Shown: piece after piece, positions 42,058-45,917 of the stretch | Layout of the letters: each line of letters begins with the position of its first letter | Numbering within the stretch: position 1 is the first letter of the stretch | NCBI RefSeq assembly: GCF_000315625.1 | Contig: NW_005434591.1 | Location: 59,895-123,894 of the forward strand | Direction of reading: 5' to 3' | Length of the DNA: 64,000 bases | Source: Guillardia theta CCMP2712 | Taxonomy: Eukaryota > Protista > Cryptophyta | Notes under the pieces: generated by a model | The model's input: only the letters and a program-made list of their open reading frames with translations | The model's database searches: none | Told to the model about the DNA's origin: nothing | Position numbers and translations under genes: made by a program

Positions 42058-44325
42058 ATGATGATACAGATGACTTGCAAGCACTTGTTCCTGTTGGTGG
42101 CCATCGTGTACGTTGTACAAGTGGACAGCAGGTTTCCTGTGATGGGGGTAGGGAGGACGGAGCATGGAGGAGCGACACGATGCAAGATTTTGAGATTGAG
42201 GGGAGGGGAGGAGCAGCGGAGCTTTCATGACGACTTCTACATGGGGGAAACACAGAGCTTGACGAGCCTGCAGATCGGAGATGTGATCGGGTTCGGCTCG
42301 TTCAGCACTGTGCATGCGGGGATCGGGGATGGGGAGATTCCTGTCGCTGTCAAGAGGACGAGGATCAACAGTGACGACGTTGTGAACCTGAAGAGGATTG
42401 AGAGGGAGATCAGCATCCTTGGCCGGTTGAACCACAGGAATGTTGTGAAACTGCTGCACGTCATGAAAGAGAAGGGGAGCAGGGGAGAGGAGGTCGTGAG
42501 TCTGGTGCTGGAGCGATGCCTTGGAGGAGAGCTCTTTGACTTTGTAAACGACTTCCAAACTTTCCATGCCAACGGAGATCGATCGTGGCGGCGTTCCAAC
42601 ACAACAGAGATCTTGACGGTGAAGGAGGAGCATATCGCCAAGATCGTCCATCATATCCTGGTCGCGGTGGACTACCTCCACTCTCAGCATGTAGTACATC
42701 GTGATCTGAAGGTGAGCTCAGATCGTGTTTGAGATGGTGGTTGCTCACTTGTTTGTTCGGAACAGCTTGAGAATGTCATGTTCGAAGATCCTTTTAACGT
42801 CGACAAGGATCCTGTTGTCAAGCTCATCGACTTCGGATTTAGCAGGGAGTTTGGGAACGAACGGGACATGTTCACTGCATGTGGATCGACCCTGTACATC
42901 GCGCCTGAGGTATGAATGTGTGTCACATTCATCTGGTCTTGTCTTGTCTTGTCTTGTCTTGTCTTGTCTTGTCTTGTCTTGTCTTGTCTTGTCTTGACCG
43001 TTATCTAATCTTCCCCTTCTGCCTCTCCTCAACTTGATCTGCACTTGCGATCATTGCCGCATCATGACGTGTGTTGGATTTGCGGCTGTCGAAACTGAAC
43101 AGGAGTGTCAGGTGCTCATGGCGAAAGAGACGGGTCAAGGTTATTCATCAGAATGTGACTTGTGGGCTGTGGGGGTTATGGTGAGTGGAAACATTCTTTT
43201 CATCGGATGCGAGAGTTCTGTTGGTGCAAACTGTTGAGGAAGAGGAGCGCGAAAGCAGAAAGGAGGATGTGGTGGTTGAGAGTGTTGCTTGACTGCAAGA
43301 CATGCTGTCGTGTCCCGTTGGCGTGACGGATCAATTGATGCTGCAGTGACATGTCAACTCATGTTGTTTGCAGTCGTATATCTTGCTCTGTTGCAAGCCG
43401 CCCTTCAGCGGGCCAACGTCATACGACATCGGGTGTGCGATCAAGAGTGGAAAGTATGCTTATCCTGGTAGGAGGAGGAGGAGGTAGAGGTGGTGTGGTT
43501 GTGACCTGTCGTTTCCACAGATTATGCACTCATATCCGATGAAGCGAAAGACTTCATTGCGGTGAGATGATTTGATTGAGGAGGAGGAGGAGGAGGAGCG
43601 AGGAGGAGGAGGAAGAGAATGTGGCGGAGGAGGAGGAGGAGGAGGGAAGGCAGATGGTGGAGGGAGGAGAAGGGGAGGAGGAGGAGGAGAGTTGGTAATG
43701 ATTTTGGCAGGGGTTACTCGAACTCGATCCTTCCAAGAGGATGACTGCACGACAAGCGCTCGAGCATTCATGGATCCGACGGGTGAGTACCGGATGTCTC
43801 CTTGTTTCCTCCTCCCGCCTCCCGCCTCCCTCCTCCCTCCTCCCCTGTTCTCCTCCCTCTTCCTTCGTTCCTCCTCCTTCTCTCTGCCCCTCTCCATTCC
43901 TCGTAGCTTCCCCTGCTCCTCTCTCTCCCCCCCCTCGTTGCTCTTCCTCCCTCTTCCTCCTCATCCTCCTTGAAACCTTCCAAGGTAACTCTGATCCGCA
44001 GTATGTACCGCAAGAGGACGAGGGATGGGGGAGGAGGATCGGCAAATTTCTTGCGGTACCTCAAAGCGACAGTTCCAAAGAATCTTGTGTGGGTCTGTCA
44101 GAAGGGTGGGAGGTCTCTCTTGGCAAGTGGCTGCGCCATATGGTATCTTCTACTTATCTTTGTCCTCCCCCGCCCGCCGCTCGATGCATGCCTCCCCTTC
44201 CACTTCTTCCTCAACCTCTTCCTCTCTATCGCTCTCACCTCCACCTGTTTCTCCTTCCATCCCCCTCGCCCCTTCCTCTTCCTCTCTCTCCTTCTGCCTC
44301 TCCCTCTCTCCCTCTCTCTCTCCCT

Positions 44326-44398
<73 letters not shown>

Positions 44399-44496
44399 CG
44401 ACCATGACCGTCGCCTTTTCTGCTTGCTGCTGCTTTCTCATCCTTGGCTCAGGTGCCGCACTGGAGAGCGTCAATACGGGGAAGAGCAAAAGGTGA
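42058..44496 (+). CDS. CAMK-group Ser/Thr protein kinase with N-terminal signal peptide and LRLRGG motif
   Basis: IGFGSFSTV, VAVK, EISILGRLNHRNVVKL, LERCLGGELFD, HRDLK/LEN, KLIDFGFS, TACGSTLYIAPE, CDLWAVGVM, ISDEAKDFI, LLELDPSKRMTARQALEHSWI. Confidence 0.93.
42937..42996. repeat. (TCTTG)n pentamer microsatellite in intron
   Basis: Direct reading. Confidence 0.95.
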
Positions 44497-44726
44497 GATG
44501 AGACGAGAGAGGGAGGAGGAGGAGGAGGAGGAGGGCAGAAGAATGGCAGGGAGGAGGAGACGATTGGATGGAAGAGATGGGAGGAGGAGGAGCAGTGATG
44601 GGAGAGGATGAAATTTTGACAGCAAGTGCAGGTCTCAGGAGTCGAGTTCCTGTTGCAGGTTGACAAGAATTATTTGAGATGTCAGAAAGGTTATAAACAA
44701 GTGGGAAAACATAATCGCTTGTCTCC

Positions 44727-44783
<57 letters not shown>

Positions 44784-45369
44784 CCATCATCATCATCATC
44801 ATGAACGGTTCAGTATTTTATCGCTCCTTTACAAAACGTTTCCCTAACTTAACATCCTCCGCGCTTGAATCCTCTTCCTCTTCTCCCTCCTAACTCTTCT
44901 ACCTCCACTCTGCTGTGTGCTATTGCGCGGATCCGTCTCCCGCTCCTGCCCCTCCTTCCCCCAAGTCAAATTTCTTGACTGGCTTGCCGTTACTGCAATT
45001 CTTGTCAGGGACCAAACAACATTCCTTACCTCAAACTCTACCTAAACACTCCCTCCCCCGCTCCTCTTCCCCTCGCTCCTCCTTCCACCTCCCTCCTCTC
45101 TCACCGAAAGTAGGCGATGAAGCCAATGCTGTTATCTCCTTTCCTCTCCTTATATTCCCCTGCTCGGACATCAGGACACCTCTCCTCTTCCTCCCTCTTC
45201 CCTGCCCCGACGTCCTCCTCTTGTCCCCCTGCTGCTCCTCCTGCTCCTCCCCTCTGCCTCTTCCACTCTTACCCCATGTCATCCTCTTCTCCTCCTGTAC
45301 CTCTTCTTCCCTTTCCCCCACTCCACTCATCCCTCCCTCCTACCCCCTCCCCCCTCCCCCCTCCCTCCT

Positions 45370-45469
45370 NNNNNNNNNNNNNNNNNNNNNNNNNNNNNNN
45401 NNNNNNNNNNNNNNNNNNNNNNNNNNNNNNNNNNNNNNNNNNNNNNNNNNNNNNNNNNNNNNNNNNNNN
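45370..45469. other. Assembly gap (N run)
   Basis: Ns. Confidence 1.
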
Positions 45470-45917
45470 TGCTGACAAATTCGCCGAAGTATTTCTCGCC
45501 TATGGGTCGAATGCGAAGACAAACGCCCGAGAGACCGTCCGCTTCCTGCCTGCTGGCTGTCAGCCCGACAGGCCAATGGCAGGAAGCAAAGGAGAGGTAG
45601 GAAGGAAGAACGAAAGGAGCAGGAGCAGCAGCAGGAGCAGCAGCAGGAGCAGCAGCAGCAGCAGGAGAAAGAAGCCATGGGGAGGAGGGAAGAGAGATGC
45701 CGAGGACAAGATAGTGGAGATGGTTGGTGACAGTTGGAACAGCAGGAGCGGAAGCAGGAGTAGGAGCAGGAGCAGGAGCAGGGACGGAGGATAGTTCTTA
45801 GGTACCTCCCTTTGAAGCGACTTCCGTCTGGCAGAGTCAGAAAATCACCAGGCAACTTTCGAGCCTGATGGAACCAATCAAAGGATGGAAAGGACAAGAG
45901 AAGCAACGAGGACGAGG

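Follow-up and report, generated by a model that had tools for sequence, protein, structure and literature searches.

A ubiquitin-tail box closes the leader of a Guillardia theta kinase that is very probably targeted to the periplastid compartment

Introduction

Why would a protein kinase carry the exact C-terminus of ubiquitin close to its own N-terminus? The question is raised by a gene in 64,000 nucleotides of nuclear DNA of the cryptophyte Guillardia theta CCMP2712 (contig NW_005434591.1, positions 59,895 to 123,894; hereafter the window, with positions counted from its first letter). The encoded protein passes from a signal-peptide-like start through a 20-residue spacer to the hexapeptide LRLRGG, here called the box, and from there through an acidic stretch into a complete Ser/Thr kinase. 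The box is a genuine element, under selection, with which the presequence ends, and not a chance match. Taken as a whole, we consider this layout best explained, with moderate confidence, by a kinase that is targeted to the periplastid compartment (PPC) and whose leader is cut at the box by a protease of the ubiquitin-tail type.

Parts of such a route are already established, namely the bipartite leaders, the +1 rule and the importer SELMA. Bipartite leaders combine a signal peptide with a transit-peptide-like part without an aromatic residue at position +1 (Gould et al., 2006, via PMC4494062 and PMC12136025). SELMA is the importer of the second outermost plastid membrane, is derived from endoplasmic reticulum (ER)-associated degradation (ERAD) and includes the deubiquitinase ptDUP (Hempel et al., 2010, via PMC12412216). 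The PPC behind this membrane has its own 80S ribosomes and a nucleomorph (PMC4494062).

Results

Anatomy of the Leader

The first in-frame ATG of the kinase gene lies at 42058 on the forward strand and opens a signal-peptide-like start of 24 residues (42058..42129, +), composed of MMIQMTCKH, the core LFLLVAIVYVV and the c-region QVDS. The hydrophobic core thus comprises 11 uncharged residues behind a basic n-region, and positions -3 and -1 hold V and S. Signal peptides were judged here only by hydrophobicity, a rule that this start passes, and by the -3/-1 rule, and the cut was placed by hand. In its likely position between VDS and R, it would yield R at +1, a non-aromatic residue of the periplastid type, followed by F at +2. 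The same start is found in the transcript-derived orthologues P0001 and P0028 of Hanusia phi.

Residues 25-44 (42130..42189, +) form a transit-peptide-like spacer with a net charge of +2, which is variable when orthologues are compared. Set beside the 41 leaders sampled genome-wide (median spacer 26 aa, mean charge +1.1), it is typical in both length and charge. The box itself occupies residues 45-50 (42190..42207, +), 44 aa from the initial Met, and is delimited by the sequence, the orthologues and the genome-wide enrichment described below. It equals the last six residues of the ubiquitin of G. theta itself (LVLRLRGG in gt_155024; ASAFind 2.0 supplement) and no second site like it occurs in any of the six frames of the window. 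An earlier note on this DNA had reported a signal peptide and an exact LRLRGG ahead of a kinase, and both the ATG and the box agree with it to the base. Directly after the box comes EEQRSFHDDFYMGETQSL, with E, a residue other than Pro, as the first residue behind GG. The acidic N-terminal stretch of the presumed mature protein, read from the sequence, covers residues 51-71 (42208..42270, +); its net charge is -4 over the first 20 residues after the box, as against the positive charge of the equally long spacer.

Several other identities were tried for this region and rejected. A degenerate ubiquitin domain is rejected because the leader, with only 20 residues between signal peptide and box, is too short and without a Pfam hit: a profile search of residues 1-61 returned none, and no ubiquitin domain before the box. 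A pseudosubstrate or phosphorylation motif does not agree with the orthologues, in which no Ser/Thr is kept at a fixed distance from the box. The RxLR, PEXEL and diatom RXL propeptide motifs misfit in the spacing of R and L and leave the invariant GG unexplained.

Conservation and Genome-Wide Enrichment of the Box

One account would be that an ordinary kinase N-terminus matches the six residues by chance. In its favor, the back-translated box pattern finds 353 matches in the genome and the reversed pattern still gives 255, so that many LRLRGG-like strings do arise by chance. Two sets of observations nevertheless refute this account, to which we assign a practically negligible probability.

The first is conservation. 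The pattern [L/M/P]xLRG[G/A] is present in 17/17 orthologues with a complete N-terminus, i.e., one reaching the hydrophobic segment (Hanusia phi, Rhodomonas lens and metagenomic cryptophytes). It occurs as LRLRGG, MRLRGG, LQLRGG, LPLRGG, LGLRGG, LALRGG, LELRGG or PGLRGA, at 27-72 residues before the glycine loop, and is the only conserved part of a leader in which the spacer is unalignable. Right after GG, the orthologues turn acidic or serine-rich, as in G. theta. Sequences of the orthogroup without a box are N-terminal fragments, and in a Teleaulax group of more distant paralogues the hydrophobic start and the box are both missing.

The second is position. The first 100 listed of the 353 genome matches were taken as a sample, of which 73 have the exact LRLRGG. 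No fewer than 37/73 of these sit 28-109 residues after an in-frame Met with an uncharged hydrophobic 10-mer, against a background of 476/14583 (3.3%) at random six-frame window positions, random positions rather than a scrambled motif being the control. This amounts to a 15-fold enrichment (binomial P = 2.8e-35). Most of the sampled distances fall between 36 and 61 aa, and that of the kinase is typical. The positional enrichment after signal-peptide-like starts that the earlier note had called for is thus found among the sampled places. The true fraction can only be higher, as some leaders are hidden by introns; e.g., the sampled locus L046 (XP_005839318.1) has its signal peptide in another exon. 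Scaled up, roughly at least 130 G. theta genes would have such leaders, counting the exact hexamer alone.

Two pairs of gene copies were seen among the sampled loci. L085 and L086 (G000:C18:773674, -, and 775174, +) are head-to-head copies of a GT4 glycosyltransferase gene 1.5 kb apart, with identical leaders and identical first 45 mature residues in the stretches shown, which looks like a recent inverted duplication. L056 and L057 (G000:C13:130769 and 133887, -) are copies about 3 kb apart that are near-identical from the box onwards; only one of them retains an in-frame signal-peptide-like start.

Cargo and Compartment

What stands behind the sampled boxes points to a specific compartment. 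The mature parts are of cytosolic or nuclear types, namely EF-1alpha, ribosomal L22e, a class IIb tRNA-synthetase OB-fold, HAT1, proteins with SAP and LisH domains, a methyltransferase and a GT4 glycosyltransferase. EF-1alpha starts at its own residue 2 (GKEK) immediately after GG. Such cargo behind a signal peptide makes sense only for the PPC, because it is this compartment that has 80S ribosomes and a nucleomorph.

Published localizations agree. Six G. theta leaders, those of ugg-t, EF-1alpha, 14-3-3, RRM1, CyP and Ubc8, took green fluorescent protein (GFP) into the PPC in Phaeodactylum (PMC12136025 supplement). All six (6/6) end in xxLRGG directly before the homologous core, as MSLRGG, LRLRGG (four times) or IPLRGG, and two of them, EF-1alpha and RRM1, are the blindly sampled loci L016 and L075. 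The PPC Cdc48 candidate of G. theta has MRLRGG (ASAFind 2.0 supplement). Among 101 cryptophyte plastid proteins of the PMC12136025 set, LRGG occurs in at most two, one of which is a protein with a non-aromatic +1 residue. We conclude that the kinase is very probably targeted to the PPC, with the box as the mark of the junction between leader and mature protein. The earlier note had placed the kinase in the PPC and had read the box as a deubiquitinase (DUB) site. The placement is supported, since the box is tied to PPC cargo and is carried by all six G. theta leaders localized to the PPC by GFP, while a DUB cut is plausible.

The hydrophobic start could instead be a signal anchor or an ordinary secretory signal, which would leave the kinase in or on the endomembrane system, without relation to the plastid, and the box for a general propeptide step of the secretory pathway or for release by cytosolic DUBs. 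Several metagenomic orthologues do look anchor-like, with 40-100 residues and a conserved RNR patch before the hydrophobic segment. Yet these long extensions come from automatic open reading frame calls on short contigs, and in the proteins of G. theta, Hanusia and Rhodomonas lens the hydrophobic core is preceded by 3-9 residues. Leaders of this type, moreover, are found on translation factors and on ribosomal and chromatin proteins, and they bring GFP to the PPC. An endomembrane location of the kinase appears quite improbable.

No description of the box was found in the full-text literature on periplastid targeting and cryptophytes (subscription papers lay outside this scope). Published logos take the signal-peptide cut as their anchor and show a 25-residue window (PMC12136025), and a box whose distance varies may for this reason have been overlooked.

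In the diatom T. pseudonana, homologues of PPC proteins (9466, 19991, 1526, 22298 and 22697; sDer1-1, TrxH, sSec14 and two sCdc48) have xRGG right before their mature parts. The forms are looser (FDLRGG, LSLRGG, FQIRGG, DIGRGG and LSARGG; ASAFind 2.0 supplement). Judged from these few sequences, the box rule may extend beyond cryptophytes in the looser form xRGG.

Proposed Removal of the Leader

We propose the following order of events for the kinase. The host nucleus would send a catalytically intact, CAMK-like kinase into the PPC, which is what remains of the red-algal cytoplasm and contains the nucleomorph. The signal peptide would take the precursor into the chloroplast ER and the spacer would take it through the ERAD-derived SELMA channel. 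In the PPC, the box would be recognized as a ubiquitin C-terminus by a ubiquitin-tail-specific cysteine protease, and a cut after GG would free a kinase starting at EEQR. The elements of this proposal differ in strength. Removal of the leader at the box is reasonably probable. The assignment of this step to an enzyme of the DUB family is tentative. More tentative still is the specific model in which a ubiquitin-specific protease (USP) that reads the bare ubiquitin tail removes the PPC leaders, perhaps a USP14-like enzyme that itself bears a leader, with a looser xRGG rule in diatoms.

A number of points weigh against this explanation. Most DUBs need a folded ubiquitin body, and the ubiquitin fold is absent here, with a mere 20 residues available between signal peptide and box. 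The signal-peptide test is a crude hydrophobicity rule, and with F at +2 there is a slight possibility that the protein is routed to the stroma, should the cut lie elsewhere. The localization data are heterologous (G. theta leaders in a diatom) and come from a supplement table in which the kinase does not figure. Finally, diatoms have ptDUP as the deubiquitinase of SELMA, and cryptophytes lack an orthologue of it (PMC12412216).

The missing ubiquitin fold and the missing ptDUP also speak for an account in which the box is specific to the PPC but is not a DUB site. It would then be read by another processing peptidase, or act uncleaved as a sorting or retention signal that holds the protein in the PPC against passage to the stroma or is bound by a ubiquitin-binding part of SELMA. 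The diatom forms GRGG, ARGG and IRGG fit a simpler RGG rule over strict ubiquitin mimicry, and the separation of PPC from plastid proteins by the box would be achieved by a sorting signal as well. On the other side, the box lies exactly at the start of the homologous core (residue 2 of EF-1alpha; the cores of Ubc8, starch synthase and 14-3-3), a position that one would expect for a cut site but that a sorting signal would not need. In addition, it matches the ubiquitin tail at 6/6 residues, and the NEDD8-like form LALRGG occurs among the orthologue boxes. The residue at P1' is never Pro: Pro follows GG in 0/41 leader-bearing sites and in 5/58 other sites, a difference that is weak on its own but agrees with the known inability of DUBs to cleave ahead of Pro. 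There is also a USP whose leader is of this kind. On balance, we regard an account without a DUB as a serious rival, though somewhat unlikely, and retain cleavage by a ubiquitin-tail-type protease as the preferred explanation. A cut before GG, exposing an N-terminal Gly for myristoylation, is also possible, yet EF-1alpha starts at its residue 2 only with a cut after GG.

The USP in question is encoded by a USP14/Ubp6-like gene (L114:72-1540; G000:C13, +). In this gene, a signal-peptide-like start and a leader ending in LSLRGG precede a weakly matching ubiquitin-like domain (PF00240, E 0.006), and between this domain and the USP Cys box GLENLGNTCYMAS lie a long spacer and an intron, in the layout of USP14/Ubp6. 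The survey took in 30 USP loci, 4 UCH-C12 matches and 5 OTU matches and showed no other deubiquitinase with a leader; around the UCH-C12 and OTU matches, the stretch searched for one was 1.5 kb, and nine weaker USP matches and the Peptidase C48 matches were left out of the survey. The gene product is a candidate periplastid DUB in a lineage without ptDUP. Its layout by itself shows only that a USP is probably present in the PPC.

A second protein bears on the origin of the box. The PPC ubiquitin precursor gt_155024 consists of a signal peptide, a divergent ubiquitin-like domain ending in LRVRGG and a canonical ubiquitin ending in LRLRGG, followed by SY. With this layout, the PPC must already process linear RGG junctions, which is a further argument for a ubiquitin-type protease at the box, and a junction of this kind is a possible evolutionary source of the box.

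In the 41 leader-bearing sites, GG is followed by, among others, E, Q, D, L, F, Y and K, residues that would be destabilizing under the classical N-degron rules, if the cut is made after GG and such a pathway exists in the PPC.

Kinase Domain and Relatives

The exon that encodes the leader matches Pkinase (PF00069) from residue 73 onwards (E 3.8e-23 for exon 1 alone), and in the Hanusia orthologue P0028 the domain spans residues 74-357 (E 1.6e-59). The motifs VAVK, HRDLK, DFG and APE are all intact, so that the kinase should be active as far as its catalytic motifs tell. Among named proteins, CAMK1 and CDPK kinases come closest, with 30-37% identity, and the label "CAMK-type" in the earlier note is fair. 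A genome search found no G. theta paralogue at E 1e-10. The orthogroup, as defined in two word searches, is sharply bounded, its members scoring E <1e-42 before generic CAMK/CDPK kinases follow near 1e-29. It includes Hanusia phi, Rhodomonas lens and many metagenomic cryptophyte-like sequences.

Between helices of the kinase domain lies a family-specific insert of 23 residues, VNDFQTFHANGDRSWRRSNTTEI (42544..42612, +), delimited by orthologue alignment. It is nearly invariant and is kept in all other orthologues and in the Hanusia transcript, while the public G. theta model GUITHDRAFT_77083 treats it as an intron. The same model (P0002) begins with MGETQSL and is devoid of the whole leader. 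By comparison with the orthologues, the public gene model is truncated and mis-spliced, and targeting predictions made from it would miss the kinase as it lacks the leader.

Exon Structure of the Gene

The exon map was obtained by local tblastn of full-length Hanusia P0028 against the window, given as two pieces on either side of 43804-43846, after which the GT/AG borders were read from the sequence. Databases were queried with exon 1, while exons 2-9 rest on the comparison with P0028. In total, the coding sequence comprises 1287 nt in 9 exons and predicts 428 aa, the same length as P0028.

Exon 1 (42058..42711, +; Pfam Pkinase and P0028 tblastn; GT donor at 42712) encodes the leader and the kinase N-lobe through HRDLK. 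It has a 100% self-match in the G. theta genome assembly and shares 99% identity with the partial public protein GUITHDRAFT_77083 and 88% with the Hanusia phi transcript model. Exon 2 (42766..42909, +), with AG/GT borders, runs from LENVMF over DFG to APE. It is followed by exon 3 (43112..43180, +), exon 4 (43374..43467, +), exon 5 (43521..43561, +) and exon 6 (43711..43782, +), in which the kinase domain ends with HSWIRR; all of these derive from the P0028 tblastn with borders read. Exon 7 (44002..44142, +; 94% identity in the P0028 tblastn) encodes a C-terminal tail with the conserved motif GKWLRHM, common to P0031 and P0032. Exon 8 (44453..44492, +; P0028 tblastn) contributes the basic tail VPHWRASIRGRAK, and exon 9 (44632..44663, +; P0028 tblastn, borders read) ends with the stop codon TGA at 44661-44663. 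Indirect evidence of expression comes from the Hanusia transcript models and from about 10 probable RNA runs, in which a fraction of about 0.49 of the sampled words is present, as would fit exons alone.

Microsatellites abound in the gene's introns and flanks, with a GTCTT-type repeat, CT runs and GGA runs (42935-42990, 44270-44400, 44700-44790 and about 45370-45470). These stretches include a CAT/CAC run, which in translation gives a long series of His, and an assembly gap of N is present as well.

Discussion

A short, conserved box at the junction of leader and mature protein makes both the removal of the leader and the sorting between PPC and stroma beyond the +1 residue testable. As a predictor of the nucleus-encoded periplastid and nucleomorph proteome, it is much sharper than tools that view the signal-peptide cut only. 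For the gene described here, it would place a predicted-active kinase, specific to cryptophytes, in the compartment of the nucleomorph, where signaling is almost unstudied. If a USP indeed reads the bare tail, the ubiquitin system would serve both import via an ERAD-derived channel and maturation, the box would be a simple sequence mark by which all nucleus-encoded proteins of the periplastid compartment and nucleomorph could be listed, and the kinase would be a nucleus-encoded signaling enzyme inside the remnant of an endosymbiont. A role of the kinase as a host control on the symbiont, as put forward in the earlier note, is speculation.

The system can be set beside several known ones. With the kinases of the CAMK group (CaMKI, CDPK), the G. 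theta kinase shares a complete Pkinase domain, intact catalytic motifs and a basic tail after the domain. It differs by the absence of EF-hands, by its conserved 23-residue insert and targeting leader, and by an identity of only 30-37% to named CAMK1/CDPK proteins.

Linear ubiquitin-fusion precursors and viral LXGG polyprotein sites are cut by cysteine proteases of the ubiquitin type (USP/UCH and the coronavirus papain-like protease, respectively). As in these, LRLRGG or LxLRGG stands directly before the protein to be released in G. theta, and Pro never follows GG in the sampled leaders. In contrast, no ubiquitin fold precedes the G. theta box, and no beta-grasp domain of about 70 residues was found before the GG tail in the kinase leader. 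The cut, moreover, would take place inside a plastid-associated compartment. SELMA with ptDUP likewise puts a ubiquitin system on the route of the precursor, and a deubiquitinating step is already assumed there. However, ptDUP is thought to remove ubiquitin from lysines and not to cut a leader, and the candidate enzyme here is USP14/Ubp6-like.

In layout, the kinase leader resembles the bipartite periplastid signals of cryptophytes and diatoms, with which it shares the signal-peptide-like start, the short positive spacer, the non-aromatic predicted +1 residue and cargo of a cytosolic type. Indeed, the leaders used in PMC4494062 and PMC12136025 contain the same box. The published rule uses the residues around the signal-peptide cut only and has no box 20-60 residues downstream, where the G. 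theta leaders carry a copy of the ubiquitin tail.

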